Positions 2,590-54,030 of a DNA stretch of 64,000 bases are shown here, piece after piece; the stretch's first letter is position 1, and each line of letters starts with the position of its first letter. Made by a program: the position numbers and the translations under genes. The notes under the pieces were generated by a model. The model was not told the DNA's origin and did no database searches. It saw only the letters and a program-made list of their open reading frames with translations. Source of the stretch: Octopus bimaculoides (taxonomy: Eukaryota); contig NC_068993.1 of NCBI RefSeq assembly GCF_001194135.2, positions 56,283,210 to 56,347,209 of the forward strand, written 5' to 3'.

Positions 2590-4437
2590 GTCCTAATCAT
2601 GCCTGACAGCCATGATAATTGCCAGGAACTATTGAAGAAGATCCAAGATGAGTGCAAAAACAAAGGCCTTCCTGATTTCATGAAAAGGGAGTTCACCATG
2701 TTGCCGGCAACTACTGCGCAAAACAGTTCCAATATTCCCAAGATACGACTACTGCAATGGAATGTTCTAGCACAAGGTAAATTTCTCCAAATAAAAATTC
2801 TCTATTAGCTTCTGTCTCTTTTGTGCGTCTGTTTCACTAGGCTGTAAGGACATCATTGCCAGCTTCTTTCCGATAGTTTGATAATTTTAGGCTGGTTGTT
2901 ATTGATGTTTAGCTCCAGGTCAAGACCTGACCCAACACCCCTTTCATTGAAAGCGTTCCAGCTATGTTATTATCTTCTTCTGGTTCTGATCTAACAAGCC
3001 TCCATGATTGTATATATGAGTATGTATGTTGAAATATGTATATACATATATAAGGAGGTGTCTTGTGTATATATATATGTATGTATATACATACATACAT
3101 ACATACATATATACAAGATAAGGCATAAATAATGGTCATTATATATTTGTTTATTGTAGTAAATTATGTAGATTTTCACTAAATTAAAGAATATTCTTTT
3201 CTCCTCTACGCGCAAGGCCTGAAATTTTGGGGGAGGGGGGGCAGTCAATTAGATTGACCCTAGTACGCAACTGTTACTTAATTTATCGACCCCGAAAGGA
3301 TAAAAGGCAAAGTTGACCTTGGTAGAATTTGAACTCAGAACGTAAAGACAGATGAAATACTGCTAAGCGTTTCACCCGGCATGCTAACATTTCTGCCAGC
3401 TCGCCCCATCTTAGTAATCTGAACAATATTGTTAGCCTGGTGTACTAAGAGAGAACTTATAAAGTATTTTGCCTGGATTAATAATGACTCTGTATTGTAT
3501 ATACAGATAGACAGACAGGCATATAGACTCGGACAGATAGCTAAGAAAGATTGAACTGTTTTCACTGTTGCATAATTCTGTAATCCAGTTATTTTTCTCT
3601 CTTTCAGCATTGTCAGTAGGAACAGACAATTTCATCTTGTGTCCTATGAGTGCACTTTCTTGGGATACAAGAAAACTTCGAATCCTAGAAGGTATTCTAA
3701 ACAACAATCCAGATGTTATCTGTTTAGAAGAAGTCGATCACTTTGACTATTTATCCTCACATTTGACATCTGTTGGGTATTCTGGAATTTTTCAGCCTAA
3801 ACCAGATTCTCCTTGTCTGTATTTAAGCAACTCTATGGGACCTGATGGTTGTGCCTTATTTTACCGAAAAGATTACTTAAAACTGTTGGATTTCCAGAAA
3901 ATTGGTCTTAAAAGCGAAGATGGGAAGCTGATGAACCAAGTAGCCATTCACTGCTTGTTGAAGATTATTTCTGGTGCTGAAGACGGCAAAGACAAATTCT
4001 CTGTAATTGTCACTCATTTGAAAGCAAAAGATGGCTTTGAGAAACTACGTTACGAAGAGGGTAATTTCATCTTGGACTATATCCATAAGAATGCCAAATC
4101 ATGGCCAGTTATTGTCTGTGGAGACTTCAATGCAGATCCCATGGAGGAAGTCTACAAATCTTTCTCAAAGAGTGATCTTAAACTGTTTAGTGCCTACACA
4201 AAATTGTCAGACGAAGGCAGTGAACCATCATATACAACGTGGAAAGTGCGTGATTCTCCAACAGGACCAGTAGAAATTTGTCGGACTATTGACTACATAT
4301 GGTGCAGTCAAAAGTCTTTAGAAATTCTTTCACTGCTCGATCTCCCCAAAGATGAAGACGTTGGACAAAACCGTCTACCTTCACATTCCTACCCATCTGA
4401 TCATCTTTCTTTAGTTTGTGACTTCCAATTAATCTAA
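2590..4437 (+). CDS. NOCT: Nocturnin (CCR4-like EEP-family NADP(H) 2'-phosphatase); coding exons 2590-2776 and 3608-4437; 5' exon(s) probably upstream of the window
   Basis: Acceptor ctacag|2590, donor CAAG|gtaaat at 2777, acceptor ctttcag|3608. The phase-1 join gives IRLLQWNVLAQALSVGTDNF. EEP/nocturnin motifs are present: DVICLEEVDH, PKPDSPC, GPDGCALFY, THLKA, GDFNA, YTTWK, TIDYIW, YPSDH. Stop TAA 4435-4437. In-frame ATG at 2599. Confidence 0.95.
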
Positions 4438-6771: not shown

Positions 6772-9289
6772 TCATGATATATGTGAAGCAGGAGTTGTGG
6801 GTGATGGGGACATCTGAGGAAAGGACGAGGTTACACTGGGGTTCTGCTGGATAAGTTCTCTGTGGCAGGAATAGCTGTGGGGGCTGATTTGAATTGGAAT
6901 ATGGTGTATCAGTGTTGGGTCCATCACTTGGAACACAAGCTGTAAAGTAAAGAAAAATAATTGATTTATTAATTAATAAACAATAATTAATTGTGGCAAA
7001 ACATTTTCTTTAGCCTGATATAAAATCAACCCTAACCATAACGAGAACTACAGTTAAAGAAGGGTCTCAAGACAAATATAAATGTTGAGGGCTTATTATC
7101 AAACCCTAGGTCTACATTACTCCTTAGGGGTCATAAGGCCAGTTTTCTGGTTTCTCTGGTGTATATATTCCTTCCTGGAAAGGGATGCCAGTCTGTCATA
7201 GGATTACTCGTTTTTACCAGCTGAGTGGACTGGTGCGATGTGAAATGAAGTGTTTTGCTCAAGAACACAATGAATCACCCAGTCTAGGAATTGAAACAAC
7301 AATCTTATGCTCATGAGTCCCAAACCCTAACCACTGGGCCATGTGTCTCCATGAGCTGAACTATGATAAACAGCAATCTATCCATAAGGTAGCACATCTG
7401 GCACTTTACTAATTCTGCTGCTCATTACTCTAATGTTAATATTAATCATTGTTCCCCAAAGTTTGGAATGATGTTACCATGGTTATAGAAATCTCTGTTA
7501 CTGGACACAACAATGATTACCTTTTAATGATGATAATAGAAAGGTTTCAAATTTTTGCACAAGGCAGTAATTTTAAGGGGAGGGGTTAGTTAATTACATC
7601 AACTCTAGTACTCAACAGATACTTATTTTATCAACCCCAAGAGGATGCAAAGTAAAGTTGGCCTTGGTAAGATTTGAACTCAGAATGTAAAGAGTCGGAA
7701 GAAATGCCTGTTTTGGCCAACACATTTAACAATTCAGCCACATTCGTGTCTTGTTTCTTTTAATAATAATGGTTTCACATTTTGGCACAAAGCCAGCAAT
7801 TTTGGCGGGGAAGGGGGCAAGTCAATTACATCGACCCAGTGTTCAACCGGTACTTATTTAATCAACCCAGAAAGGATGAAAGGCAAGATCGACCCCAGCA
7901 GACACCTTTTAATAATAATGAAAGCAAATAATTTGTTAAACAGGTGTGAAGTCATTGGTTAATAAAATAAGATTTTTTCCAAATAATACATTATTTACAC
8001 AATTCTTGATTTTTTTATTGCCCACAAGGGGCTAAACGAAGAAGAAACAACAAAGAACATTACACATGGGGCCAAAATCGAGTGAAAATGAATAAGTAAA
8101 ATGAACAAATAAAAGGATGGAACTGTTCCAACATCTAGGATGGTACTTGGTGACAGGAAGAACATTCGATTGCAGAAAATCTGCATCAATAAATTTTGTC
8201 TGCCAGTACCGTGTGACTGGCACTCGTGCCGGTGGCATGTAAAAGCTCCCACTACACTCGGAGTGGTTGGCGTTAGGAAGGGCATCCAGCTGTAGAAACC
8301 ATGCCAAATCAGCTTGGAGCCTGGTGCAGCCTTCTGGTTTGCTAGTCCTCAGTCAAATCGTCCAACCCATGCTAGCATGGAAAGCGGACGTTAAATGATG
8401 ATGATGAACAATAAAAGAGTGATTATGAAGATGATGATTTCTGACACTACACCATTGTATTATAATGTTCAATATACTCTGTTTTACTACTTCTGGTACA
8501 TCACATGCATGCACACGTGTACATCCATGCCCAAAGAATGGAGACCCTTACCTCAATGTAGGGATAAAAAGCTGACTGGTCTGTGATTTTGAAATAAGAT
8601 TCTGTATCAAACAGCAACTTATACACTGTTGTCTTAACGATTTTTTGTCCAGCAAGGAATGCAACATGGCCATCAATGCTACTGGCACTGGAATTAAAGA
8701 AATACAAACATGTCAAAAAAACAATGAGAACAACCCAATCACTAACACACTGATCCTTTCTTCTAAAACATGATAAGCCATGTGGTTTCTCAACAAGAAA
8801 TCTGTTTTGCTTTGGCCCTCTTCTTTCATACTTCAATCCAGCACTGGATTAATCATTAAGCAAAATGATCATGTGCTTAATGAATCAAGGAAAGGAGGGT
8901 ACCACAGAAATGATAAATGGTTTATGGCACAAAAGAAATCACTTCAAACTTGCTAAAACAAGTATTCCAAGTGGTTTATATGATTGGAAATATAATTTCG
9001 AAGTGTTCATGGTGTCATAGAGAGGAGTAGATCAAACCAGTATGAACCAATCAAGACTCAAACTGTACAAAATGATGAGTATTTTTCTTACTTAGAATGT
9101 TCAACTCCTTTTGTTTTTTTGTTTTTTTTTTCAGAAACTGCACTTTAGTGTTAAACAAGTTTCTTACCTTTTCTGAAGCAGTTTCCAAGATCGCTTCTCA
9201 ATCTGAATAAATAATAAGACAGGTACCCCAGTTGCAGGCAGACCTTTGGAAATATCAAATACATGGCTAGAAATTGGAGAAGTTACTTC
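6772..9289 (-). CDS. URAH: 5-hydroxyisourate hydrolase / transthyretin-like domain, divergent; exons 9289-9168, 8687-8552, 6939-6772
   Basis: All three junctions are GT-AG and phase-compatible (2, then 0). Spliced product: EVTSPISSHVFDISKGLPATGVPVLLFIQIEKRSWKLLQKSASSIDGHVAFLAGQKIVKTTVYKLLFDTESYFKITDQSAFYPYIELVFQVMDPTLIHHIPIQISPHSYSCHRELIQQNPSVTSSFPQMSPSPTTPASHIS*. It matches the HIUase/TTR motifs HVxDxxxGxPA, YKLxFDT, FYPYxE and HxP...SPxSY. The first exon has an acceptor and no ATG. Confidence 0.88.
8200..8405 (+). mobile_element. RTE-X LINE 3'-tail repeat (intronic)
   Basis: Matches 19800-19965 and ends in (ATG)n. Confidence 0.8.
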
Positions 9290-10263
9290 CTGCAAAATAA
9301 TGTCGTTATGGAAAGGAATTAATGAGAATTGTAATGGGAGAAAAAAACAGAAAGGGAAATACATGAAGAACTGAGAGGGAAATTAACAAAAAGAGAGAGA
9401 GAGCAGAAAAACAAAGGGAGGGAGTGAAAACTGAAGTCTAAAGGATATATTTCTTTTACATCATTTTCCCCAATCTTTTTATCCAATCTAAATTGGTTAC
9501 AACAGGTATTTTTATAACCATTCTTCGCTGGGATAATTGGATACTACAACCTAAAACACATTCAACCATGAAATAGCAGTTGAGCCTGTTTTGGTTTTGT
9601 TTGCCAAACCAGGGGAAACAGTTATCTACCTTGCTCAATGATATAACACAAGCTGTCATAAATTTCATATATCATCGTCGCCTGTTGCTATAGTAGGTGT
9701 TCAAGGTGTCACGTAGTGGGGGGGTCAATCTGAAATTGTGTGGGTGGGAAGTGAACTTCTTAACCACACAGATATGCCAAAGTGGTTAGTGTTAGGAAAG
9801 GCATCCAACCATAGAAACCACGCCAAAGCAAATAGCAGAGCTTGGCGTCGTCTTCTGACTTCCCAGTTCCTGTCAAACCATCTGAGCCATGCAGGCATGC
9901 TAAATAGATGTTAAATGATGATAATATATACATACATACATAAATATATATATATATTATGTATATAATATAGTAATAACCCTAGCTGGAATTTATAAAT
10001 ATTTTAGATATTTCAAAATATTTATAAATTCCAGCCAAGGATTATTATTATTATTATTGTTATTATTACTATATTCATCCTACATTATATCACCACAGAT
10101 TGGTGCGACCCAAAAAAACTGGTATTTCCAGTTGGCATCATTAGGTTTTGGCTGGCATAATGGAATAGCGTATTCAAAATGTTTCCCCGTAAATGAACTT
10201 AAAGGATATGTATGTATGAATGTATATATGTATGTGTGTGTGTACTCTATGTGTGTATGTATG

Positions 10264-10404: not shown

Positions 10405-10705
10405 AAAAGCACCATTTGATGGCGTGGTCATTGCCACTGCCATCAGAGTGGTCCTGTGCTGGTGGCACGTAAACGGCACCATTTCAGTGTGGTCAATGCC
10501 AGTGGCCTCATGCTGGTCGCACCTAAAAAGTATTTACTACACTCTTGGAGTGGTTGGTGTTAGGAAGGGCATCTAACCGTAGAAACCTTACCAGATCACA
10601 CTGGAACCTGATGCAGCCTCCTGGCTTGCCAGTCCTCAGCCAAACTGACCAACCCATGCCAGCATGGAATGCGGACATTAAACAATGATGATGATGATGA
10701 TAGTG
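10405..10705 (+). mobile_element. RTE-X LINE 3'-tail repeat (intronic)
   Basis: Same family motifs, ends in (ATG)n. Confidence 0.75.
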
Positions 10706-10782: not shown

Positions 10783-13700
10783 TTAATATACCATATCTCG
10801 TGTCCCTCGTTTCTTTTTCTTTGTGTGGCCATCGTTACAGTTGATGATGTTGTTGTTATTATTATTGATATTGTAATTATTATCATTATTATTATGAATG
10901 TTGTTGTTGTTGTGGTTAACCATGTTGCTGGTGTTGTGATGAAGCGGAGGGTTGAGTTCCTTTTTGCGTTTGGCTTTCAGGTTGTTAATGTCCCTCGTCG
11001 TCAGCTGTTTGCCAGTCACATTACAGATATACTCTCGGATGTTCTTAGTCTTCATTCCAATGTCTATTAGCCGATATGTCTCCGCGAGGACATGGGGTGA
11101 CAGAGACTGCCTGCGGTTCTCAGGGTACATGTGACCCAGCATCTGATGTGAATGGTTTAAATTGATGGATCGTATCACCATCCTCTGTTTCTCTCGGTCA
11201 ACTGATGCAGCAATTAGAGCAGGACATCCAGTTTTATATGTTCTGAAATTCAAAAGGGAAAACAGGTTGTTATTATTATTATTATCAAGGCAGTGAGCTG
11301 GCAGAATTGTTATAATGCTGGGTGAAATGGTTAGTGGTATTTCACCCATAGACACATTCTGGGTTCAAATTCTGCTGCGGCTGACTTTGCCTTTCATCTT
11401 ACATAATAAATTAAGTACCAGTGAAACACTGGGGTCAATGTAATCAACTCGTCCCCTCCCCCAAAATTTCAGGCATTGTGCTTTTAGCAGAAAGGATTAT
11501 TATGGCAGCTGACTGGACTGGAGCAACATGAAATGAAGTGTTTTGCTCAAGAACACGAGTCGCCGGGTCCAGGAATCGAAACCACAATCTTACGATCATA
11601 ATGCTGAAATCCTAACCACTAAGCCACACACCTCTTGTTCGACCCATATAAGCAGAGAAAAGGTGTTAAAACGATAACGATTTATATTACATTCGCATGT
11701 GGAGTGCGATGCAGTGGTTGACAGAGGAAATCTCTTTTACGGTTTATTGTCTGAACTACTTTTGTAACTCGAGAAGTTTTCACTACGATTGTAGCGGTTG
11801 AGAGGGAGTCGAATATGGTTCATATGCTGAGGTGGCGTTTTCTTAACAGAATAACACAAACTCCAGATTGGAGACATGCAGTAACAATTAAGGTCAGATG
11901 GAAACTCTATATATGATAATTGGTTACAAGTTTTGGTTCAAGTCCAGCAGTTTCGGGGAGGGGGGGGGGCTAAGTTGGTTACATCGACCCCAGTACGCAA
12001 CTGGTATTTATTTTATCGACCTCGAAAGGATAAAAGGCAAACTCGACTTCGACGGAATTTTAACTCAGAACGTCCAGACGGACGAAATGCTGCTAAGCAT
12101 TTTGTCCGGCGTGCTGACGATTCTGCCAGCTCGCCACCTTGTTTGTATATGATAATTAAGATCCTTTTTTTTTTTTTAACATTAAGCACAAACTGAAGGC
12201 AAGTATGGTAACAGATGAGGTTTAGTGAAACGAGAGTTCATATAATTCGTGGCCTTTCCTAACACAAAACCCAGGCTAAACATTAATCATGACGAAATTT
12301 AATGAAAGTTTATCAAATATGCCGATCTTTCCAAACACTAACACTAGAATGAAGAGAATGGTGGTACCGCAATGTGAAGCAAATCAAGCCAGATTCAACA
12401 TCCCTAGAATCAAACACATCTAGAACCATTCCGTCGCTCAAATTATTTAGATATAGTTTGTACAGAACTACGTTATCATACGTGTCCTTTTTTTTTTTTT
12501 TAATAATTCCATTTTACCAACGTTTGTACTTACTATTTGATAACACAGGTAATAATTAGTTTCTTTCAATCTACTGTTTCACTTCTATATGAATGGTAGC
12601 TATCTGTCTAAATACCTGTGTATCTATGTACTAATCATTAATAATATCCGCCAGTCTTTCCATACATATAGCAACATGTCTAAATGATAATAAATTTATC
12701 TGCCTATCTACATAACTATAGATTACACATACACACACAACAACACATAACTATCTACAACATTTGAAACGTATTCGTAGAAAATTTCAGCAAAGAAATA
12801 TCCATTTTTCAGAAAATTATTAGAAAACAGTGTTGGGTGTGAAGAACACACGTCTGTAATCACACACACACAGAGTATTAAGAATAAAATCTTATATCGA
12901 CACCCATGCTTCGTTTTAAGGATATAAAAAGTTAACAACGAGTGATTAACAACAGGTGGGAAAGAGAAAGAGAAAGAGAGACAACAACAGACAGGTATAG
13001 ATTGATCGAGAAGAAGAAAACACCACATGAGATATCTCGCACTAAAAAGAAAAAAAAATCGTGTGTTGCAACCACATGGTTCCAGGTTCGATCCCACTGC
13101 ATGGTATTTTAGGCAAGTGTATTCTGATACAGCCTTGGGTTCACCAACACCATCGAATGAAATTTGCTGAACGGAAACTGCGTCGGAACCCATCGGAGGA
13201 ACCGTTCTTGTTTTGTGTGGAAGTGTGTGTGCGTGTGTGTTTATGTTTACGCTAGTCTAAAACCGGTGTTGCTTATGTTGTGTCCTTTTATGTTCCGTAA
13301 CTTAGCAATTCAACAATAGAGATTGATAGATGAAGTACAGTGGTCAATATGATAATGAAACCAGTAAAAGAAAAAGAATATAAAGAAATGGACGAAATAC
13401 TTTTGGTTGGGTCGTATACCAGGTAAGGTCCGCCGTCTTGAATAACCAAATTGTTTACAAACATATTTGACATATTTGTATTTGAACTTCTCGTCTAAAG
13501 GTTCAACTTTGACACATCGGGATCGGTTAGCTTTGGCAATTGTTTGACAGTCATGGATGGTGAACACAGCATTTGTTAGCTTACAGACAGCTGCTATGGC
13601 AGAAGACAGGGCAGAAAAGTCTTCGAACTCATCACCAGCATTGAGTAAATCCCGACAAGCTTCGTTTGCCCCAATCTCAATCAGAGCTTTGCTCACAAGT

Positions 13701-13966
13701 AAATCCTCGCTAAATTTGTCCGAGCTCTGCTCGTGCTGATGTTGTGGTTGATGGTGGTATTGTTGTTGTTGATGATGATGTTGGTATTGTTGCTGTTGTT
13801 GTTGTTGTTCGAGTGTGGTTGTAGTGAGGACAGTGCCCGCCAGAACGTCAGCGGCCGAGGTGGATGACAGTTGCTGTTGAGGTATGACCACCAGTTCGGT
13901 GACCGATGTTGGAGTTGCAGTTGATTGTTCGGTGGTGAGAAGGCTTACACTCTCTGTCGTTGCCAT
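10783..13966 (-). CDS. Mutator/MULE-derived ZSWIM3_N/FAR1-type DNA-binding-domain protein; exons 13966-13401 and 11242-10792 (or read on to stop at 10783)
   Basis: ATG at 13966 in strong context (aaagATGg) with an in-frame TGA upstream; the ORF-track start at 13987 is a TTG. Donor CAAAA|gtattt at 13400, acceptor ttcag|11242. The join gives AGDEFEDFSALSSAI...FTIHDCQTI...YKYVKYVCKQFG...RPNQKTYKTGCPALI...IRSINLNHSH, the Cys/Cys/His/His pattern of MULE/FAR1/ZSWIM3 N-terminal domains. It is followed by an HTH-like segment (GKQLTTRDINNLK), poly-Q/H and poly-N tracts, and KKKKR. Confidence 0.8.
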
Positions 13967-17805: not shown

Positions 17806-18877
17806 GTACGGCAAGCAGCATATTTGATTCCCAAAACTCAGTAAAGATACTATTAAAACCAGAAAATTGTAAGTAAATTTGTATTAATAACAACACTTAA
17901 ATATATTGAATGAATGTGTTTAAAGCTAAGTGAAATTCTTCGTCCCATTTCACTGTTAATATTCATTAATTTGTCACCTGGCGATCGTAAAAAACGAGAA
18001 GGAAACGAAGAAATGTTGTCACTGAAAAATGCAAATTCTTTTAATGTAATTCTTCCTCGATATGCTTGCAAGGTTGTAGATTACAACTGTTTGATAACTT
18101 CGAGGGAAGAAATTGTGGAGGGAACTTAGATTATTCTTTCTTCAGCCGCTCCGACTTTGTTACCTCTCAAGTTCCGTAACTTAAATCTTTTCCACTTCCC
18201 TTTTTTTCTTTCCCTCTCCTGAATTCAAAAGCTTGAAACGGCAACATTGCGTAATCTACGTTCTCGAAAATGTATCTCTGCAGAATATCATTTAAAAATA
18301 TAGATTTTAAGGATATCTATGAAGAAACAAAGTCGTGAGATAGCAGTATGATCGCCCCCCTCCCCCATTAAAAAAATTGTGATGTTATTTTATTAACGAG
18401 CGTATCTCTGCAAAATTCCAGGGGAAAAAAATGCATTTTTTAGAAAGTTTTGAAGAAACATACAACCAATCAGAGCTCAACTATCAAACTAATTTGGGAG
18501 CTCATAAGAAGTGATGGGCGATAAGATAAGGTCACTTGAGTAAGGAGTGACCATGCTTCTTTTCTCTTTTAAGAATGGTTTTCTTCCTTTTATATCTCTG
18601 AAGAATGGTTATACAGCTTCAATATGATTACCATTTTAATTTCATTCATATAAGTTACATAATCATGACAGCTATAAGACTTTGTCCTTTCTTTGGTCTC
18701 TAGATATCATTTAAAATTTTTAATTGTTGATATGACATAGTGTGTCACATGTGTTTGTATATTGTCTTTATTCTCCTTTTGGTTGAAAAATAAACAGGTT
18801 AATTAACAGAGTACAGTGTCTACAAGTTGATGAGTACCACATATTCCCCTCCATTTTCTTATTGCTATATATAGGTT

Positions 18878-19966
18878 GCCCCTGGGAGCTCCTCTATGCT
18901 GATGACCTTGCACTAATTGCGCAGTCACTATCAGAACTAGAGAAGTTTAAGGTGTGGAAGCAAGGACTAGAATCGAAGGGCCTTAGAGTCAACCTAGCAA
19001 AAACCAAAATCCTAATAAGTAGGAAGGTAGATAAAACACAAGCCCCTTCAGGTAGATGGCCCTGCTCAGTATGCAGTAAAGGAGTAGGTAGTAACTCTAT
19101 AAGATGTACCCGGTGTAAGCTATGGACACATAAGAGGTGCAGCAATATCAAAGGCAGATTAACTACAAAGTTAGTCTTTGNNNNNNNNNNNNNNNNNNNN
19201 NNNNNNNNNNNNNNNNNNNNNNNNNNNNNNNNNNNNNNNNNNNNNNNNNNNNNNNNNNNNNNNNNNNNNNNNNNNNNNNNNNNNNNNNNNNNNNNNNNNN
19301 NNNNNNNNNNNNNNNNNNNNNNNNNNNNNNNNNNNNNNNNNNNNNNNNNNNNNNNNNNNNNNNNNNNNNNNNNNNNNNNNNNNNNNNNNNNNNNNNNNNN
19401 NNNNNNNNNNNNNNNNNNNNNNNNNNNNNNNNNNNNNNNNNNNNNNNNNNNNNNNNNNNNNNNNNNNNNNNNNNNNNNNNNNNNNNNNNNNNNNNNNNNN
19501 NNNNNNNNNNNNNNNNNNNNNNNNNNNNNNNNNNNNNNNNNNNNNNNNNNNNNNNNNNNNNNNNNNNNNNNNNNNNNNNNNNNNNNNNNNNNNNNNNNNN
19601 NNNNNNNNNNNNNNNNNNNNNNNNNNNNNNNNNNNNNNNNNNNNNNNNNNNNNNNNNNNNNNNNNNNNNNNNNNNNNNNNNNNNNNNNNNNNNNNNNNNN
19701 NNNNNNNNNNNNNNNAGTGCCCCTGGACTGGCTCTTGTGCGGGTGGCACATAAAAGACACCATTTCGAGCGTGGCCGTTTTTGTGCGGGTGACACGTAAA
19801 AGCACCCACTACACTCTCTGAGTGGTTGGCGTTAGGAAGGGCATCCAGCTGTAGAAACTCTGCCAAATTAGATTGGAGCCTGGTGTAGCCATCTGGTTGC
19901 ACCAGTCCTCAGTCAAATCGTCCAACCCATGCTAGCATGGAAAGCGGACATTAAACGATGATGATG

Positions 19967-20258: not shown

Positions 20259-23200
20259 AGTGTATTAGCAGCAAACGACAAAATTATGATGAACTCCAAA
20301 CCTAATCAAGTGTTTTCCTGCCATATTAAATATTTACCAGTTTCTGTAACCAAGGTATTTATTTGAACACATTTGTTTTCTATTATCTTTTTCTTTTACT
20401 TATTTCAGTCATTAGACTGTGGCCATACTGGGGCACCGCCTTGAGTTCTTAGTCGAATGTATCTGTAACAAGATTGGAAAGATGACACCAAATAGGCTAG
20501 GATAATGTGTATGTAAGAAGGTTTCAGATTTCAGTGTATGTGGATATAAGAAATATCAGAAGGAAATGTTTTCTTAATAAACATCACAATTCATTCCTTG
20601 ATGGTAAATCACACACGTAGTAGTAAGCACATCAAATCAACAGGGTGTATCGAGACACGAGTTAATTTCTTGATAATCATTAAGGGAGTTAGATTCAGTA
20701 TTTAGTTGCAAATCTAAAATATCCAATGTGCAGGAGTGGCTGGGTGGTAAGAAGCTTGCTTCCCAATCCCGTGGTTCCTGGTTCAGTCCCACTGCATGGC
20801 ACCTTGAGCAAGTGTCTTCTACTATAGCCTCAGGCCGACCAAAGTCTTGTGAGTGGATTTGGTAGACAGAAACTGAAAGAAGCCTGTCATATATCATCAT
20901 CATCATCATTTAATGTCCGCTTTCCATGCTAGCATGGGTTGGACGATTTGATTGAGGACTGGTGAACCAGATGGCTACACCAGGCTCCAATCTGATTTGG
21001 CAGAGTTTCTACAGCTGGATGCCCTTCCTAACACCAACCACTCCGAGAGTGTAGTGGGTGCTTTTTACGTGCCACTGGCATGAGGGCCAGTCCGGCGGTA
21101 CTGGCAATGGCCACAATCAAGTTGTGTTTTTTATGTGCCACACATACATACACGACAGGCTTCTTTTAGTCTTCATCAACCAAATCCATTCACAAGGCTT
21201 TGGTCGACCCGAGGCTATAGTAGAAGACACTTGTCCAAGGTGCCATGCAGTGGGACTGAACCTGGAACCACGGGATTGGGAAGCAAGCTTATTACCACAT
21301 AGCATACAAACTGATGTAGTACATAATGTAAACATTCAAACATTGCTGTGATCTTCCCAAATCCTGCTGCGTTTCGCATGCAGTTTTTGGTCTTCCAAAT
21401 TTGTCTTGGTGTATAAGTTGAACTATCTTATTTGACTGTAAATCCTGGAAGATGTGGTAGTCAGTGGGGGCAAGATCAGGTGAGTACGGTGGATTAAATC
21501 ATTTTCAAATCCTTTCTGATAATTTTCAAAGGGAATAAATTAATACTGTTCAAAATATTGTTTTATCTCAGAAATTTTAGCAACAGTTAATTCATTCGTT
21601 ATTTGATTCATGGAGTTTTTCCTTGTCAAAAGCATCGAACAGGGGTAGAGGACACATTGATATGTCAGCCATTACACATGCTATGTGGCTGAGCGAAAAT
21701 GCTAGTCAGCAAGCCCTTGAGTCATGGGAACAGGGTCATTTCTTTTGATTGTCTCACATGAGGTGCCCAGCAACAGTGAGAACAGCCAGTAGAATGGGTT
21801 TTTTTTACTTTTTTGCAATGGTTCTGATATTCCATTTAGTGGAATTTTGGTGAATGATCACCAAACCAAAAGTTCTTTCATTACAAAACCTAAGATTAGT
21901 AGCCTGAAAAATTGTTATCCTCCTCATCATTGTCATCACCATTGTTGTCATCATCATGATGTTTGTCTTCCCTGCTGACATCGGTCAGATGGTTTAACAG
22001 GAGTTGGCCAGGCCGGAGACTGCACCAAGCTCCACTCTTTTGGCATAGTTTTTACAGTTGGATGCTCTTCCTACTATTAAGAATAGTTTGTCATGGACGT
22101 TTGGATAGATTAGATATTGTGTTTTATTGTAAAAACTGTTGTTATCTTTATTTCAGAGTCAAGTTGCAGATATCTTCTCGGCCTACGATGATATTTTTGA
22201 AATCTATATCAGTGAAAGAGTGGTGGAACAGAATTACACATTTGGGTGAGAGAAACGTTCTTTACTTAAAGGATGGGGAACTTTATGTATTTATTGAGGT
22301 TTGTTAGCAAATGTTGGACAAATGGTACAAATTGATCCATATTGATATAGAGCATAGATTGGTTGAGAGGGTATATATATGTAGGGTTGCAGTGGTTACT
22401 AATCGTTGCTGTTGAAACATGTTTGTAGTATAGGGTTAGTTGATTATGTATTATATAAATCTTGATTAACAAGGTTGATCAATGGCAAGTCCCAAGATAT
22501 ATATGTAATGAGAATGTGGAAGTAAACAGTGTAGTTTATTATAGTTTTACAGTGTCTGTGCTACTACCCTGTCCCCAAGATGACAAGGATATCAACACCA
22601 GACTCTTCTAATTGTTTTATTTGACAGTTTTGTCAGATTTAAGAGCCAAGCATCAGCCAACCATGCAGTGAAGTTTGTAACGGGAAAAACGCTGAATGGA
22701 CAAAAATTGCTTGTCTCTCATGCGAAACCATCAGGTAAATATTCAAACACCTTTACGCATCTATCCCCTTTCTTCTCTTTCCTTTTTCATCCTCTTAGCA
22801 AGACAACTATCTCTCTCCCTCTTTTATACTTTTTAACCTTCTCATAAACTGACACAAAGCCACCTCCCTCAATACTACTCTCCTCACCTGTCAATTGAGG
22901 GGTCTTTGTATTGCTAGTTAATATGGTGACCCCCTACTGGTGCTGGCACCACAAAAAAAAAAAGCACCTACCACACTCTGTAAAATGGTTGGTGTTTGGA
23001 AGGGTGTCCAGCTGTAGAAACCATTCCAGAGCAGACAACAAATTTTGGTACACTTCCTTGGCATACCAGCTTCTGTGAAACTGTCCAACCCATGCCAGCA
23101 TAGAAGGCAGATGTTAAATGATGACAATGATGATGAATCTTTTATTGTTTTATTTGGTCTGCTGTCATAATGTAGCATTGCTTTCAAAAGCTTTTAAAAA

Positions 23201-25970
23201 ATTATATGCACTCCACTATGCTGATGAGTCTGGTGCAGCCCTCCAGCCTTGCCAGCCCTGGTCAAACCGTCCAACCCATGCCAGCATGGAAAACGGATGC
23301 TCAGTGATGATGATGATGTTACACTAGCTCTGCTGTTCCACTGTTATCAGTTATAACAAACTTTTGGCTTCCTTGTTTTGGCAGTAGCGGTGAACCCTGA
23401 GTCTTCCAGATTAATGGTCAGCACCGTTAGGAAACAACTTCAAGAAGAGTTTGGTAAGATTTTCTTGTTTTACTACTTTTGTTTAAGTTTTAATTTAAAA
23501 GAAGATATTTTCTAAAGTTTTTACAAATCAGTATTTACATAAAACCAAAGAAGAAAAAAAAGAAAAAGTTGATGGATTTTTAAAGATTAAGTTGGATGCA
23601 TGTGTAAAGCTGTTGATGATGATGATGATGATTGCAGTGACAGTGAAGAATTCATTCATGCATTTACTCTTTTACTTGTTTCAGTCTTTTGACTGTGGCC
23701 ATGCTGGAGCACTGCCTTTAGTCGAGCAAATCGATGCCAGGACTTATTCTTTGGAAGCCTAGTACTTATTCTATTGGTCCCTTTTGCCGAACCGCTAAGT
23801 TATGGGAACGTAAACACATCAGCGTCGGTTGTCAAGCGATGCTGGGGGGGGGGGACAAACACATACACATATATACGACGGGCTTCTTTCAGTTTCCGCC
23901 TACCAAATCCATACACAATGCTTTGGTCGGCCTGAGGCTATAGTAGAAGACACTTGTCCAAGGTGCCACGCAGTGGGACTGAATCCGGAACCATGTGGTT
24001 GGTAAGCAAGCTACTAACCACACAGCCATTCCTGCACATTTGTTTGTTTGTTTCTTTAATGTCTGTTTATTTGTGGGTTGGACAGGTACTTGCTTCATGC
24101 AGCATTCTATGGCCAGCTGCTCCTCTTGTGGCTATTCGCCAGCTGTTTATCAAGCACACATAACCAACGGAAGAGCATTGTGGGAAATGGACACTATATG
24201 AATGAACAAACGCATGCACCACTAACTCTGTGTGCACGTGTGTGTGTAAATATGTATATCCAATCATAAAATCCTGCTTCAAAATCAATTCCTGTTCAAG
24301 CTTTGCTACGATGAACAAATGGATATTGAAGAAACAAATGAATGTGCGCACACACACACACACACAAATACAGATATTTATATATGTACATTGTTCATTA
24401 TTTACATTTGACAAATATATGTCATCATCTTGTTTGTTAACACGTTTCGGATGATATACCCTCCAGCCTTCATCAGATGTCTTGGGGAAATTTTGAACCT
24501 GGGTTCTCGTTCCTAAGGTATTTTTCGATGTTGTTATTATTATTATTATTATTCAGGTCACTGCCATATGCTCACGGGCATATGGTGTAGTGGTTAAAAG
24601 CGCAGGCTACTAACCCCAAGATTCCGAGTTCGATTCCAGGCAGTGACCTGAATAATAACAACAACAACATCATCATCATCGAAAAATACCTTAGGAATGA
24701 GAATCCAGGTTAAAAACTTCCCCAAGACACCTGATGAAGGTGAAACATGTTAACAATATGTTTCAGCCGAAACATTGTGTTAACAACAAACAAGATAAGG
24801 ACAAATATCCATCAAATGTAAATAATGTAAATAATTCCTCATCTCATAAATATAGAAACTGTATTATATATGTATATGTTGTTTACAGCTTCTACAGATG
24901 GAGAAATTGATGAACTTCTGGAGGAGGCTACTTCTAAAAGATGGATGAAATCGCATCACTCGTCCTCAGAATGTGCTTTTTCTTTGGAACTGACCGATAT
25001 TCTTACAGACACAATGGACTACAAGTAAGAACCAAACAGCTCTAATTGATGTTGTTGAGTCCCAGGTCAGCTCTGATCCACCAGGCCAATAAAGACATTC
25101 CAGCTTTGACCATTCCTTTTATTGAAGCACATTATCTACAACTACATTATGCAACATGTCTTTTTTTTTTTTACTACTTTTTGCTTAAGTTGGGTTGGAT
25201 TTGAGGGATATTTGGCTGCTATTTCTAGCAGGTCTAGCGACCATGTAGCGGTACTCTCATTGGGTGGAATGCTTGTGGTCACCAGATCTAGTGCTAATAT
25301 GGAATTGTGCAATAGAGCAGTGAGCTGGCAGAATGGTTAGCATGCTGGGCAGTGCTCAGTGGTCTTTATGTTTTGAGTTCAGATTCCGCTGGGGTTTACA
25401 TTGCTTTTCATCTTCTTGCGGGGTCAATTAAATAAATATCAGCTGATCACTGGGGCTGGTGTAACTGACCTACCCCGCTCCTACAAACATGCCGGCCTTG
25501 TTCCAAAGTGTGCAAATGGCAGACACACACACGTGTAAAAAGCTAAATGTTTTTGCAGCTCTTAGTTCTTTTACATTCTGAGTTCAAATCTTCCTCATGA
25601 ATGCTTTTTTTCCTTTTTCCCATTCATTCTTTGAGATTGATAAAGTCCAATACCTTGGATGTTACAGTTAAAAACTGACTATTAATGTTATTTATGATGT
25701 ATAAATCATTTAAATATCATTGTACATGTCGTTATAATGCAGTAAAATAGTAACTTCATAAGCAATTCACTAAGGTTCTAAGTAAAGTCAAACTCAGTAA
25801 CCAAGGTCATAAGTAAAGTAATAAGTAAAGAGTTATTTTCTTTTGATGTCTAATTTTTGTTTCTATTTTCTTCCAACAGATACTGGAATGAATTTTTCTC
25901 AAAACAGAAGGAAATCTCGCGGAAATTGAAGATGATTCAAATGCAAACATCAGCTAATGGTTCAAGATGA
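20259..25970 (+). CDS. Single-RRM RNA-binding protein, about 186 aa from ATG 20286; exons 20259-20354, 22157-22245, 22628-22734, 23385-23453, 24889-25024, 25880-25970
   Basis: Six GT-AG exons with consistent phases (0,2,1,1,2). Product: MMNSKPNQVFSCHIKYLPVSVTKSQVADIFSAYDDIFEIYISERVVEQNYTFGFVRFKSQASANHAVKFVTGKTLNGQKLLVSHAKPS...EISRKLKMIQMQTSANGSR*. RNP2-like CHIKYL, RNP1-like YTFGFVRF, and a typical RRM end (LNGQKLLVSHAK). The 5' end is unresolved. Confidence 0.85.
20893..21135 (-). mobile_element. RTE-X LINE 3'-tail repeat, near-identical inverted partner of 19800-19965
   Basis: The reverse complement differs from the upstream copy at only a handful of positions over about 165 nt (by eye). 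Confidence 0.85.
22935..23125 (+). mobile_element. RTE-X LINE 3'-tail repeat, diverged
   Basis: gttggtgtttggaagggtgtccagctgtagaaacc...ccaacccatgccagcat...gttaaatgatgac. Confidence 0.7.
23664..24026 (-). mobile_element. SINE family A, full length
   Basis: Complete body and head. Confidence 0.88.
24391..24830. repeat. Fold-back: two inverted ~170-bp SINE-body arms around one tRNA-like head (24575-24645)
   Basis: The left arm ending ...ttattcaggtcactgcc (24565) is the reverse complement of ggcagtgacctgaataa... (24639). Complementarity continues through cgaaaaataccttaggaa, ccccaagac and tgttaaca. Confidence 0.85.
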
Positions 25971-30974: not shown

Positions 30975-33900
30975 GATATATAAACCATGAAGCTCTGATA
31001 CAACATACTTGTCTGTATGAATGATATACAGACTACAAAATGGTCTCTGTAAATGGTGTAGAGATCACAGAATTTGTTTGTAAAAAATGGTATTTAGACC
31101 AAAGACTTGCCCATCCCCAACCATTAAAAAAGAAAGAGATTTTTGTTTTTTTACCATTAACAAGAGAAAAAAAGCAAAAAGAAAGCAAATAACTAAGTAT
31201 CCATATAATTCTTTTGTCATGATTTTGCTTAAGATTGATTAAGCATGGCAATTTCTGTCTCTTATCCTTACTCTGTAAGAAACACTGAGCCAAACGGTAT
31301 ACAGACCAGAGATGTCTCTATGTACGATATATAAGACCACAGACTTGTTAAACTAAATGGTATAGTCCACAGAGTTGTCTAAATGGCTTGTGTACCAAGG
31401 TCTTAACTGACAGAAAGATATAAAGGTTTTAGACCTATCCAGTGAAAAAGTGTATACACAACAGACTTGTTTAACTGAATGGTTTAGAAAACAGACTTAT
31501 CAAACTGAAGGGTATAGACCACAAGCTTGTCTAACTGAAGGGTATAGACCACAAGCTTGTCTAACTGAAGGGTATAGACCACAAGCTTGTCTAACTGAAG
31601 GGTATAGACCACAAGCTTGTCTAACTGAAGGGTATAGACNNNNNNNNNNNNNNNNNNNNNNNNNNNNNNNNNNNNNNNNNNNNNNNNNNNNNNNNNNNNN
31701 NNNNNNNNNNNNNNNNNNNNNNNNNNNNNNNNNNNNNNNNNNNNNNNNNNNNNNNNNNNNNNNNNNNNNNNNNNNNNNNNNNNNNNNNNNNNNNNNNNNN
31801 NNNNNNNNNNNNNNNNNNNNNNNNNNNNNNNNNNNNNNNNNNNNNNNNNNNNNNNNNNNNNNNNNNNNNNNNNNNNNNNNNNNNNNNNNNNNNNNNNNNN
31901 NNNNNNNNNNNNNNNNNNNNNNNNNNNNNNNNNNNNNNNNNNNNNNNNNNNNNNNNNNNNNNNNNNNNNNNNNNNNNNNNNNNNNNNNNNNNNNNNNNNN
32001 NNNNNNNNNNNNNNNNNNNNNNNNNNNNNNNNNNNNNNNNNNNNNNNNNNNNNNNNNNNNNNNNNNNNNNNNNNNNNNNNNNNNNNNNNNNNNNNNNNNN
32101 NNNNNNNNNNNNNNNNNNNNNNNNNNNNNNNNNNNNNNNNNNNNNNNNNNNNNNNNNNNNNNNNNNNNNNNNNNNNNNNNNNNNNNNNNNNNNNNNNNNN
32201 NNNNNNNNNNNNNNNNNNNNNNNNNNNNNNNNNNNNNNNNNNNNNNNNNNNNNNNNNNNNNNNNNNNNNNNNNNNNNNNNNNNNNNNNNNNNNNNNNNNN
32301 NNNNNNNNNNNNNNNNNNNNNNNNNNNNNNNNNNNNNNNNNNNNNNNNNNNNNNNNNNNNNNNNNNNNNNNNNNNNNNNNNNNNNNNNNNNNNNNNNNNN
32401 NNNNNNNNNNNNNNNNNNNNNNNNNNNNNNNNNNNNNNNNNNNNNTAACTGAAGGGTACAGACAACAGACTTGTCTAACTGAAGGGTACAGACAACAGAC
32501 TTGTCTAACTGAAGGGTACAGACAACAGACTTGTCTAACTGAAGGGTACAGACAACAGACTTGTCTAACTGAAGGGTACAGACAACAGACTTGTCTAACT
32601 GAATGGTACATAAGCCACTAGACCCTGACTTGTCTATATCAATACTAGACAACAAGCGTCTAATTCAATTTCCAGTCCATATATTTACACTCGACCAAAC
32701 AAAATCATAAGAAACCAGAGCTTAAATGTTACCCAACTAAACAATAGAGTCCAAAGAACGATAAAGAGCTAGGGTACTTACCAGAGGTAGTTTTCACTAC
32801 TTCATTTATGGTACCATCAACACCTTTTTCATTTTCAGCGTAGGCAAGTAAGAGAGACTTTTGTGATTGAGTTAACGATCTGTAAGAGACAACAGTCAAA
32901 ATATTTTATTTAGGTACAGGCACTAATATTCAGGTCTTCTACACCTTCATCGACAGTAACAACAACAATAATAATGATAATCAATATTATAAAAAAACTA
33001 GATCATGCATTCACTGTCACTACTTCCATCATAGATGTTAGCAGTGTGGGAGGCAAGTTGGATGTAGGTATAAAGAGAACACAATTCTTCGCACATGGTC
33101 AGATGTATGTTGCATTATCAAAAGCATCAAGAAAAGGAAATATAAAAATATTAACTGAGATAAATGAAAAGGGGTCCATTTGCTGACAAGTTGTGTCTGC
33201 AAAAAAAGATTCTACAGTGATGTGAGACATTCATTACTCTCTTTTAATTGAAACGTATTTAAGTTTCTTTTTAATTGCTATGAAAGGGACACTAGAAACA
33301 CTTAAGACATCTATAAGTGAATATAATGAAACAACAATATAGCAAAACTCAACTCTTCATATTGGTAAATGTAATTCATTGATTCCAACTAGAGAATCTA
33401 TTTTCAAATTCACTCAAGTGAAGAATTCATGAACATTTTCCATTGACAGTCTCATCTCTTTCCCAATTTTCATTATCGTATTTTTTAAATGTATCATGGA
33501 TTATTTTACTGATTACGGAAAAAACTATAACAGAGTCTTTGTTCAATTCATGAGCACTTTGTCAATTTACTCTATAATTTATGTGATCCTCCGACTGTGA
33601 GTCCACTGCCCTAACCACTGGACCATTTCGCCTCCGCTAGTAATAATAATAATAGTAAAATTTATGTATACTTACTTAGGTATAGAAATATGTATATGCA
33701 CAATATGATCACCAAACCCTGAACTGTTCACTCTTGATATTCCTTTCCTTGGTAGTCTAATATAATCATGTGACTGTGTTCCTGCTGGGATCTGGGACAA
33801 GAAAAGAAGAGAACCTCAGGTGAATCAAACAGGACGGAAGGTGGGTGGGAGCTAGATGGACATTCCAGCATTTTATCAAGGTTAAGAAGAGGGTGGTTTC

Positions 33901-36839
33901 TAGTGGGGTGGTGCATAATTATTGCAGCCTTTTTTCAACAAATTTTATTCAACAAAAACAATAACAATATTTAACAAAAAATATCTTTAAATGACGGTCT
34001 GGCAGTCTGCCAAGCAAATGGGAAGCAGTAATTGAAGTAGATGGTGAATATGCTCCAGAATAATCGTTTAAAGATGTTTTAGTTACATGTTATTGTTTTT
34101 GTTGAATAAAATTTATTGAAAAAAAACCCCAATAATTATGCACCCACCCAATATATTATTCGTTTCTCTTGCCATTCCAACCCCACCAACATCAGATCAT
34201 ATAAGTGTCATTGATGAGCTAAACTATGAATGACTTACATCCTCAACCACAGACCTTCTTTATCATCATCCTCATCATCATCTAATGTCCACTTTTCCAT
34301 GCTTGCAATGGTCAGATGGAATTCGTCGAGGCAGAATTCTTGTTCTCAACCCTCACTTGTTTTGAAGTAAGATATTTTCCCATAGCTAGACATGTTTTTC
34401 ACAGAAGACTAGAAACGAACAACCTTGCTTAGAACATGATGACAAGACAAGGGCACACACACACACACATACACATCATATATATATATGAATGATAGGC
34501 TTCTTTCAGTTTCCTTCTAGCAAATTCACTCCCAAGGCTTTGGTTGTCAAAGGTGCTGTGCAGTGGGACTGAACCCAAAACAACATGGCTATGATGCAAG
34601 CTCCTTAACCACACAGCCACCCCTATGCCTTTGAAACTTAAAACATCACACATATCCAATAACCCCTCAAGTCAATGCAGGATGTCAGTGGCTGACATCC
34701 AGTCCTTAACTAAGACACTTGTTTACCTAAAAAGTTGCAAAAGTCTTTCACTCAAGAAATACTGGTTGGGGCAAAAAGAATCCCCCCACACATACACACA
34801 TTAAAGAAAGTGATAAAAATGTCTCTAGTAATCACTGGATGACTTACTTTCAGTGAGAGTGTCTCATAAATTCCTTGGATCTTCTTGGAACCACCTAGAA
34901 CTGCCTGTGATAAACTGATGTGAACATTACTGTGAACATCAGCACCATCACGCCAAAACTGTTTACTTTTGGAAACCTGAAACATAACATTACAGATAAG
35001 TAGTGGTAGTAGTAGTAATAGAAGTGGTGGTAATTCTAATTCTAAGCTTTCCATGTTCCCAAATGGTTAAGAAATTTGATTCCCAGCTATGAATCCCTTG
35101 GTCCATCCCCACCCAGCATGGTTGGTGTCTTGAGTTCATATCTCCCAATACAGCTTCCAATCAGTCACATGATTCTAGATGCAAGAAGAGGGAATCGTTG
35201 ACCGAATCAAACCTGTAAAGTGTTGACATTTGTCACCAGGGAGATAAAAAAAACCAACTGATTTACACATGGCAAGAGAGATTTTGGAAGCCAGGTTGTA
35301 GATTATTGAAGCTATTTCAATATTTGACTAGTGCTTATTTTAACAGGCCCTGGAATGATGAAAGGCAAAGCTGGTCTTGGCAGGCTTGAACTCAGTATTA
35401 AACATAAAATTGAGTTACACTCTTCTATGTGCAGTACTGGTTTTGTCATTTCACTGCTCTCTGATTTTGGTACATAAGAGAGTTTACAGTTAATTAATAC
35501 TGACCCCAAGGCATGACTGGTATTTATTTTTACTGAACCTGGCAGAATTTGCTTTCAGAATGTAAAAGAATGTAATAACTAAATACCACATGGGGTCTAG
35601 TACAGAACTCTACATGTTCTGCTAACCACAACAACACACCTACTACAGCCACCACCAAGAGTGACTAATGTCAAAACAAAAGTTCCAATGAACTCACCTT
35701 AAATGTAATGAAAATTTCCTGAGTCCCAACTGACATCCGTACCGTTTGACCATCTTCCACACCTGAGGACAAATACATTACAGTCATTTGTTTTGCTTTA
35801 CATTCAGTTTTTTTTCTGTGTTAGTGAAGAAGAAGCACTCCATCGGTTACGACATCAAGTGTCCCAGCTGATACAATTAATGGAACAGCCTGCTCATGAA
35901 ATTAACGTGCAAGTGGCTGAGCACTCCACAGACACATGTACCCTTAACATAGTTCTCGGGGATATTCAGCGTGACACAGAGTGTGACAAGGCTGGCTCTT
36001 TGAAATACACGTACTACTTATTTTTGTCAGCTGAGTGGACTGGACCAATGTGCATCGCTGGGAACTGAACTCACGACCTTATGATGAGGCGAATGCCCTA
36101 ACCACTAAGCCATGCACCCTCACGAGTTAGTACAGGTTACATGAATATATATTACTGAGGAAGTGTTTTACAGCTGGAGACCCTTCCTGTTGCTAACTTT
36201 TGTTTTTCAAGTAAAGGATTCTGTTGCCAGGGAAATGTCAATAAGTCTCAGCACTTGTAAACAGTCATTTACGTTCAGTTTCCATCTACCAAATTCACTC
36301 ACAAGCCATTGGTTAGTCTGAAGTCACAGTAGAAGGCACTGACACAAAATGCAACTGAACTGGAAACCAAACAGACTTCTTAAATACAGCCATACATGGA
36401 GCTCCAGCATGGTCTCAGTCAAATGACTGAACCAAAATAATAAAAGAACACACACACACACACACATATAGGCAGACTGAAACGGTAGAATTTGAAGTGG
36501 TCTGTGCTGGCAAGATTCAGTTTATAAAATTCAAAAGACAGAAAATACTCAGAGTTAAATAGTTTTGTAAGGGACTATAATACTATCCTTATATATGAAA
36601 CTCCCACATTTTTTAAACCTAATTTTTGACAAAAAAGGGTTCCTTATACACATTAAAATATGGTACATATGATTAAGGAATTGTTTAAAGCTGGATGCCC
36701 TTTCAAGTAAGGGATTACCTCACTTGTCTTTGAAAGGGTAGAATTACTTGGTAATTTGTTAACTGGGAAATTCAACGAATGGGATCATCCACACCAGTCA
36801 ACTATCAATTCTTGAAATCCAAAGCCTAAAACAACAACA

Positions 36840-53678: not shown

Positions 53679-54030
53679 TTCAAAGCATTGTTCTTTCTGT
53701 TCTGCCTGCGCTTCTCTGCACCAGCTTTCCTGTCACTTTCATATTGTCGGGAACCGCTGTGAACAGCGACCCGCCACTTCGCCACTTGGTCCTATCTAAA
53801 GCTGTCTGCTCCCATGATGACGGGTCAATGTTGAAGGCCTTCAGTGATACCTTTAGGCTGTCTTTAAACCGTTTCCTCTGGCCACCATGGGAGCGCTTGC
53901 CGTGCTGGAGCTCACCAAACAAAAGCTTCTTGGGTATTCTGTAGTCTGGCATGTGGGCTACATGACCAGCCCAGCGAAGCTGAGTTCTCATCAGGATGGT
54001 AGGGATGCTTGGGAGCCCGGCACGAGTGAG
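53679..54030 (-). mobile_element. RTE-BovB-like LINE ORF C-terminal fragment
   Basis: EILTRAGLPSIPTILMRTQLRWAGHVAHMPDYRIPKKLLFGELQHGKRSHGGQRKRFKDSLK...WEQTALDRTKWR. Confidence 0.85.

Follow-up and report, generated by a model that had tools for sequence, protein, structure and literature searches.

Is a sequence related to 5-hydroxyisourate hydrolase (HIUase), but with a broken hydrolase signature, still an enzyme, a relic of one, or a domain put to some other use? The locus that raises this question lies at 6772-9289 of a 64-kb window of animal DNA that is rich in A and T and interspersed with assembly gaps and transposon remains (64,000 nucleotides of the Octopus bimaculoides contig NC_068993.1, positions 56,283,210 to 56,347,209 of the forward strand; positions below are those of this window unless another sequence is named). 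We found that the HIUase-like stretch consists of the last three of the five coding exons (13966-6772, minus strand) of XP_014779890.1, a protein of 480 amino acids (aa). We are very confident that the locus is a five-exon, single-copy host gene in which the fusion, the conservation and the loss of the hydrolase signature go together. From the sequence evidence, its HIUase-derived part is probably a pseudo-enzyme domain conserved within a protein that is likely to bind DNA in the nucleus, and is neither a pseudogene nor a free carrier of the transthyretin kind.

The gene and its orthologues

Spliced mapping placed XP_014779890.1 (P0157) on five minus-strand exons of the window with no mismatches:

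Coding exon 1: 13401..13966, minus strand, 566 nt, with the ATG at 13966-13964 and a phase-2 end at a GT donor; encodes residues 1-82, an N-terminus rich in Gln, His and Thr, and then the first half of a zinc finger, with Cys170 at 13459-13457.
Coding exon 2: 10792..11242, minus strand, 451 nt, with last residues ...RGTRDM and a phase-0 GT donor; completes the zinc finger (with Cys195 at 11226-11224 and His219-x-His221 at 11154-11146) and goes on to encode a helix-turn-helix-like module of three helices (11097-10954, residues 238-285) and a poly-Asn linker that has KRKK (residues 280-283) and KKKKR (residues 330-334, 10821-10807) as its basic clusters.
Coding exon 3: 9168..9289, minus strand, 122 nt, EVTSPISSHVFD...LLQK, the first exon of the HIUase-derived domain; phase-0 acceptor ttttgcag/GAA (the slash marking the boundary, here and below), phase-2 end, catalytic His348 at 9265-9263.
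Coding exon 4: 8552..8687, minus strand, 136 nt, SASSIDGH...FYPYIE, with D385-G386-H387 at 8674-8666.
Coding exon 5: 6772..6939, minus strand, 168 nt including the TGA at 6774-6772, LVFQVMDPTLIHHIPIQISPHSYSCHREL followed by the tail; His437-His438 at 6906-6901, His446 at 6879-6877 and C450-H-R-E-L454 at 6867-6853.
Tail: 6852-6775, minus strand, 26 Ser/Pro-rich residues at the end of exon 5.

Exons 3 to 5 each carry an AG acceptor, exons 3 and 4 carry a GT donor, and the three join as 426 nt in frame, 141 codons that translate as EVTSPISSHVFD...SIDGHVAFL...LIHHIPIQISPHSYSCHRELIQQNPSVTSSFPQMSPSPTTPASHIS before the stop. Exon 3 has no initiator codon of its own and is spliced onto the upstream exons 13966-13401 and 11242-10792; because it opens at a phase-0 acceptor without a start and two coding exons precede it, the HIUase-like feature is one domain within a larger gene. 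A preliminary description of the stretch had implied a stand-alone gene, and this part of it did not hold, the domain having neither a start codon nor a signal peptide of its own and the zinc-finger half lying upstream. An in-frame ATG at about 9364 was considered as a stand-alone start and rejected; it lies in the polypyrimidine tract just 5' of the canonical acceptor and is unused in every orthologue model and mRNA.

With only the 141-aa domain as query, a word-indexed search of proteins returned no match; exhaustive searching of 1.8 billion representatives, made without a profile, returned only two close ones, each with the domain C-terminal in a much longer protein. The cluster members were XP_014779890.1, two short Octopus vulgaris models, the Argonauta hians protein GAB1601753.1 (P0002, 555 aa) and Logan assemblies, to which a search with the full-length protein added the Acanthosepion pharaonis protein 'uraH' (P0178); the protein searches gave one copy per genome. 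The same junction, together with the DGH/NGH and SYSCHREL motifs, is found in O. vulgaris, A. hians, A. pharaonis and Sepia-like mRNA contigs. The junction reads ...RDM/EVTSPISSH in Octopus, ...QEM/EFPSPISSH in Argonauta and ...KEM/EMSSPISSH in Acanthosepion, and the exons of 122 and 136 nt are common to all three genera.

Two Logan contigs of spliced RNA carry the fusion: L005 (ERR12374249, 2264 nt) has an unbroken 422-aa open reading frame (ORF) with both domains, and L001 (SRR29271464) joins exons 2-5. Because both are spliced RNA, and in the cuttlefish genome their exons are spread over ~25 kb, the fusion is real at the mRNA level. The two O. vulgaris models, CAI9732081.1 and CAI9732080.1, stop after exon 3 ('...LLQKSLCSK'); exons 4 and 5 are intact in that genome (OX597826.1, L004, at 21468-21603 and 24050-24217) with canonical splice sites, a coding sequence of 490 aa assembles, and the domain differs from that of O. 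bimaculoides at 2 of its 141 residues. The short models are an annotation error and not a gene loss. The A. pharaonis protein (L003, CAHIKZ030000701.1) bears its 'uraH' label despite the loss of the signature, and its model is without 38 zinc-finger residues that are present in the mRNA-derived Sepia-like P0154.

Ratios of nonsynonymous to synonymous rates (dN/dS) were computed by the NG86 method, and Fisher tests compared the nonsynonymous with the synonymous proportions. For the domain core the ratio was 0.038 between O. bimaculoides and O. vulgaris and 0.064-0.068 between Octopus and Argonauta; the zinc-finger/helical region gave 0.033-0.044, and the tail gave 0.17-0.28 for Octopus or Sepia against Argonauta. 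The domain-core value for O. bimaculoides and Sepia, ~0.03-0.045, is a bound only, dS being saturated (pS >0.7), and we relied on the Octopus-Octopus and Octopus-Argonauta pairs because dS was saturated for Octopus or Argonauta against Sepia. Fisher p values ran from 1e-4 to 3e-27 across pairs (5e-21 for the domain, Octopus against Argonauta). Constraint is equally strong on the domain core and on the zinc-finger region, and weaker on the tail.

These results bear on whether the locus might be a decaying pseudogene, or an annotation chimera of two neighbouring genes. Public proteomes do hold likely run-ons that join transthyretin-family (TTR) domains to BrkDBD or cadherin, and the O. vulgaris and A. 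pharaonis models of the fusion gene are faulty. However, the domain has a dN/dS of 0.04-0.07, four species have unbroken frames and sound splice sites, the junction matches across species, the mRNA contigs are unbroken and exon 3 is without its own start, and a pseudogene or chimera is scarcely credible. The preliminary description had likewise judged the gene not to be a pseudogene and had named a dN/dS near 1 as the mark of neutral decay; motifs invariant in four cephalopods that separated long ago, the spliced mRNA contigs and the low ratio of the domain, which is not neutral, agree with that judgement.

The HIUase-derived domain and its pocket

Against the Pfam transthyretin family (PF00576) the 141-aa domain gave an E value of 2.9e-24 (86.2 bits, cut-off 25.3) over profile positions 1-108 of 109; in the full-length protein the match lies at residues 345-452 (E 6e-24), and the orthologues match too. 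Comparison with solved HIUases and transthyretins gave E values of 3e-20 to 1e-8, with the HIUases alone at 3e-20 to 1e-16. AlphaFold modelled the domain at a confidence score (pLDDT) of 87.5, confident to about domain residue 118, with R-E-L-I as a short additional strand and residues 121-141 disordered. The top Foldseek matches of the model are HIUase and TTR structures, PDB 2g2n among them, at TM scores of ~0.9 (target-normalised) and root-mean-square deviations of 1.4-1.6 Å. As modelled, the transthyretin-type beta-sandwich fold is intact.

The cephalopod domains were aligned with 52 canonical HIUases, in which 44 positions are conserved at >=85%. The N-terminal His (SSHVFD, H348) and the His of the HxP motif (HHIP, H438) are kept and are invariant across four cephalopods. 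The DGR motif has its Arg in each of the 52 canonical sequences, whereas all four cephalopods have His387 there, and the YRGS with which all 52 end is replaced by H451-R-E-L454 and 26 Ser/Pro-rich residues. The preliminary description had reported both retained His, the DGH, the loss of YRGS, the extension and the intact splice sites and frame, and all of this was borne out, with the extension now counted at 26 residues. Alignment with canonical HIUases places the breaks in the hydrolase signature at the Arg, Tyr, Gly, Ser and C-terminus. The cephalopods keep 23 of the 44 conserved positions, which belong to the fold core (e.g. Y402, F406, Y411, F420-Y-P422, S444-P445). At 18 others all four depart from the consensus, and these cluster around the pocket; they include T346S, T347S, L350F, T352I, R387H, Y437H, V439I and LLL441-443IQI, as well as T450C, Y451H, G453E and S454L.

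The active site of HIUase is made of two His, an Arg and the Tyr-Arg-Gly-Ser with its terminal carboxylate, at the dimer-dimer interface, where the carboxylate of the terminal Ser orients the substrate and pairs with the Arg (PMC8272043). Hydrolysis is abolished by H-to-A changes and by Y108F in the Salmonella transthyretin-like protein (TLP), by Y116T in the zebrafish enzyme and by Y156T in that of amphioxus (PMC4324301). In the cephalopod domain the Arg, Tyr, Gly, Ser and terminal carboxylate of the signature are all gone, and from these losses and the published active site we infer with high confidence that hydrolysis of 5-hydroxyisourate has been lost.

The residues that remain invite the alternative that the domain is still an enzyme, HIUase or a related hydrolase, tethered to the DNA-binding module, with His387 and His451 in place of the Arg and Tyr. 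H348, H438 and R452 are invariant, the conservative change R41K lowers the catalytic rate of Klebsiella HIUase only fivefold (PMC8272043), and strong purifying selection on the pocket residues fits any function that uses the pocket. Yet each of the Tyr replacements listed above is by itself enough to abolish activity, in three homologues (PMC4324301), the carboxylate of the terminal Ser is gone (PMC8272043), all 52 canonical sequences keep both the Arg and the YRGS, and the peroxisomal targeting-like motif of the oyster and scallop isoforms has disappeared; we regard a surviving hydrolase as quite improbable.

The preliminary description had instead proposed a shift from enzyme to binder, and in its strongest form this would make the locus a stand-alone HIUase paralogue turned free ligand carrier, a convergent 'invertebrate transthyretin'. 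The resemblance has substance: vertebrate transthyretin is an independent descendant of HIUase in which catalytic residues were lost, the Tyr of YRGS was replaced and the C-terminus was extended, and the cephalopod domain has lost its catalytic Arg, Tyr, Gly and Ser and gained a C-terminal extension in the same way (PMC4324301). A hydrophobic stretch also follows the in-frame ATG at about 9364, in sequence that is otherwise intronic. However, exon 3 begins at a canonical acceptor, four species join it to the upstream exons, the mRNA contigs are fused, and the protein has no signal peptide, whereas vertebrate transthyretin is a secreted, stand-alone tetramer with one. The thyroxine channel of transthyretin was opened by Ile-to-Ala and Tyr-to-Thr changes at the positions of I16 and Y116 of zebrafish HIUase (PMC4324301). 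The cephalopod domain, in contrast, lacks the Ile-to-Ala change and keeps I352 at the I16 position, has His and not Thr at that of Y116, and retains both catalytic His. Nor is it orthologous to transthyretin, because its change arose on the coleoid stem (see below). The signature loss on which the proposed shift was built therefore stands, while the free carrier does not, the domain being the C-terminal module of a 480-aa protein with I352 kept; a free carrier appears very improbable indeed.

An alternative last exon that restores YRGS, another outcome that the preliminary description had foreseen, was not found in the window: a six-frame regular-expression search of its whole length for [YFHT][RK]G[SAT]-stop gave no match. 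Searches with tblastn, using the domain and mouse HIUase (an approximate query), found no second HIUase copy in the 64 kb. When oyster HIUase was compared with a set of 5.8 billion proteins that includes the Octopus, Argonauta and Acanthosepion proteomes, no cephalopod stood among the best 120 relatives, which were from bivalves, echinoderms, one brachiopod and bacteria. The second, YRGS-ending HIUase for which the preliminary description had proposed a search is thus missing from the window and from annotated cephalopod proteomes, whole genomes lying outside the reach of this search. No gastropod HIUase was found among the same best 120, and gastropods, like cephalopods, may lack HIUase or have a very divergent one.

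N-terminal module, origin of the fusion and possible role

The N-terminal half of the protein probably combines a CCHH zinc finger of the ZSWIM3_N/FAR1 type with the three-helix module and basic clusters, as a transposase-derived module predicted to bind DNA. Pfam ZSWIM3_N (PF21599) matches residues 109-221 (E 1.1e-12, 48.8 bits against a cut-off of 27.8), with DUF5575_N overlapping it. The finger pattern is C170-x24-C195-x23-H219-x-H221, in which C170 and C195 are invariant in all orthologues and the His pair occurs in every model that covers the region; this pattern is typical of the FAR1/MULE (Mutator-like element) branch of WRKY-GCM1 zinc fingers (PMC1702500). Helices at 238-249, 254-265 and 271-285 form the only confident part of the N-terminal AlphaFold model (pLDDT 82-91). 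The N-terminal 211 aa had no significant match among solved structures, and Pfam matched neither a transposase core nor a SWIM finger in the O. bimaculoides, Sepia-like or Argonauta protein (P0157, P0154, P0002). The N-terminus, MATTESVSLLTTEQ..., has on reading no signal-like hydrophobic core, and the PTS2-like nonapeptide found in the oyster and scallop HIUase isoforms is gone from the cephalopod protein.

The intron pattern points to where the domain came from. The canonical HIUase gene of oyster (P0172 on L006) has a phase-2 intron at ...EIER/GTTNNDGRG, a 136-nt exon, a phase-0 intron at ...FYPFVE/VVF, and an additional phase-0 intron just upstream of the domain. Since the intron positions, the phases and the 136-nt exon length of the cephalopod gene are the same, the domain descends from an animal HIUase gene, and so three HIUase exons have been taken up by exon shuffling, by way of compatible phase-0 introns. 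In the history that we propose, the last three HIUase exons would have been spliced, in a coleoid ancestor, behind two exons encoding the transposase-derived DNA-binding module, a capture that would also have replaced the N-terminal targeting or leader exon(s) of the HIUase itself. The pocket would then have been re-lined in a single burst (R387H, Y437H, Y446H, T450C, Y451H, G453E, S454L and LLL to IQI), with the 26-residue tail covering what had been the free C-terminus, after which purifying selection would have frozen the domain.

The relative rates of change accord with such a burst. Tajima relative-rate tests counted 26-37 changes unique to cephalopods against 5-11 unique to bivalves (p 6e-6 to 2e-3), and 32 against 7 for octopus and oyster (p 6e-5); before the freeze, change in the cephalopod lineage ran at 4-5 times the rate seen in bivalve HIUases. 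Of the 32 derived states in octopus, 26 are shared with Sepia and none is confined to octopus, which places the remodelling on the coleoid stem, with the changes held since.

Given a transposase-derived partner, the gene might also be read as a mobile Mutator-like element carrying captured HIUase exons as cargo. The N-terminal domain does belong to the FAR1/ZSWIM family, which derives from MULE transposases (PMC1702500), and the window is rich in transposon fragments. This reading is opposed by the lack of any transposase core or SWIM domain, the single copy per genome in searches, introns conserved across coleoids, and the same neighbours in Octopus and Argonauta, and we give it next to no weight. 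The fusion gene has an RRM_1 gene on its upstream side and a convergent Exo_endo_phos gene on its downstream side in both Argonauta (L002) and O. vulgaris. In the window, a 289-aa ORF at 3568-4437 on the plus strand (PF03372, E 2e-19) is convergent with the fusion gene, and locus L007 has the RRM_1 neighbour; these conserved neighbours argue for a host gene and not a mobile element. An exon-like ORF at 34752-35054 on the minus strand matches DnaJ_C (E 2e-7), and a DnaJ gene is also found upstream of the Argonauta orthologue, which extends the synteny.

To our knowledge, all characterised members of the HIUase/transthyretin family are homotetramers. Since they are, the captured domain probably serves as an oligomerisation module, supplying the DNA-binding half with a stable homo-oligomer and a symmetric inter-subunit pocket, possibly one for a metal or other ligand, and the fusion protein would most likely act in the nucleus; on this role, reached by analogy with the family, our judgement is evenly divided. 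The four residues corresponding to the substrate contacts His7, Arg41, His92 and Tyr105 of the Klebsiella enzyme (H348, H387, H438 and H451) are all His in cephalopods, C450, H437 and H446 adjoin this set, and 4 of the 26 stem substitutions are to His. A pocket between subunits that is lined with His in this way may hold a metal ion or a small ligand, a reasonable extension of the reports that E. coli TLP holds Zn in its active site and that the Salmonella enzyme is inhibited by Cu and Zn (PMC3528726).

Several points weigh against the explanation as we give it. The FAR1 match (PF03101), seen in the Sepia-like P0154, is weak and below its cut-off (21.1 against 28.1 bits), and the N-terminal AlphaFold model, built with six sequences, has a pLDDT of 52 overall and <50 over the zinc finger. 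The proposals of tetramerisation, DNA binding, nuclear localisation and binding of a metal or ligand all draw on the sequence and on what is typical of the family. The retained H348, H438 and R452 may support residual or altered hydrolytic chemistry, and changes next to the interface (LLL to IQI) could mean that the quaternary structure differs. The absence of a canonical HIUase from cephalopods is a weak negative, drawn from annotated proteomes and a word-indexed search. Taking fusion gene, frozen pseudo-enzyme domain and role together, we hold the whole explanation to be moderately probable.

A further possibility, unlikely in our estimate, is that the dead pocket is a sensor, whose occupancy by Cu/Zn or a purine catabolite controls the assembly or the DNA binding of the finger half; doubling of the His set across the two-fold inter-subunit interface would then create a high-affinity site. 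If true, the gene would encode a coleoid-specific ligand- or metal-regulated transcription factor made from a metabolic enzyme and a transposase fragment.

Surroundings, relatives and significance

An Rfam scan of the window at gathering thresholds gave no match. Runs of N at ~4.6, 17.2-17.7, 19.2-19.7, 31.6-32.4, 48.4-49.0, 53.1-53.7 and 59.7-60.3 kb leave the five exons untouched and swell the ORF list with X-filled pseudo-ORFs. The remaining features are as follows:

~8230-8400, 9780-9900 and 10560-10680; 7560-7700, 7780-7900 and 11420-11480: examples of two kinds of short interspersed repeat, seen by eye in both orientations in and around the introns of the fusion gene.
18862-19176, plus strand: weak reverse-transcriptase match and PHD-like finger, retroelement debris.
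31450-31640 and 32440-32655: a 30-nt tandem repeat on both sides of an assembly gap.
50554-50889, plus strand: match to a retroviral-type aspartyl protease, retroelement debris.
50886-51191, plus strand, and 53680-54147, minus strand: no Pfam match; a retroelement origin is suspected from reading the sequence.

Among known systems, canonical HIUase (EC 3.5.2.17; zebrafish 2h1x, oyster XP_062620821.1) shares with the cephalopod domain its Pfam family, fold, introns and catalytic His. It differs in that the cephalopod domain has DGH, HREL followed by 26 residues, IQI, four new His and one new Cys, and in that the enzyme is a stand-alone protein of ~120-150 aa with a PTS2-like leader, whereas the cephalopod domain is the C-terminal part of a 480-aa zinc-finger protein. 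ZSWIM1/ZSWIM3 and the plant FAR1/FHY3 proteins, which are domesticated Mutator-like transposases, have a similar N-terminal finger of the WRKY-GCM1 type (PMC1702500); in cephalopods, by comparison, only the DNA-binding end is found, with the HIUase-derived domain in the C-terminal place. Fusions are not new to the family, and in Arabidopsis TTL and other fusions of OHCU decarboxylase and HIUase (P0038) the HIUase-family domain is likewise the C-terminal of two (PMC2834698), but these join consecutive enzymes of one pathway and keep YRGS, whereas in cephalopods the domain has lost the signature and is paired with a DNA-binding module. Four further proteins (P0015, P0032, P0068, P0095) have a YRGS-ending HIUase domain behind a Brinker DNA-binding domain or cadherin repeats, and may be probable run-ons or further real fusions. 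Three metagenome-derived proteins (P0003, P0091, P0115) each contain two tandem HIUase-like domains, with degenerate internal ends in P0003 and P0091 (SYKGS, TYQGS) and an internal YRGA with a canonical final YRGS in P0115; the signature thus varies in proteins from beyond the cephalopods too.

Our search of the literature on mollusc, cephalopod and octopus HIUase, transthyretin-like proteins and cephalopod urate oxidase turned up no account of this gene or of its architecture, and database labels range from hypothetical to 'DDB_G0292252' in O. bimaculoides and 'uraH' in Acanthosepion; the gene is annotated in databases and undescribed in the literature searched. The analysis corrects the public annotation of the last two, as well as the short O. 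vulgaris model. The lack of a canonical HIUase in cephalopods, if confirmed, bears on whether enzymatic uricolysis has been retained.

In transthyretin, the textbook example, HIUase became a non-enzyme through a few changes in its pocket. The cephalopod gene would be a second, independent replicate of that transition with a different outcome, the fold having been not freed as a carrier but welded onto a transposase-derived DNA-binding module and kept throughout coleoid history. In animals known for their genomic novelty, it would offer a testable system for the recruitment of pseudo-enzymes, the re-tuning of the transthyretin-fold pocket and the making of lineage-specific regulators.

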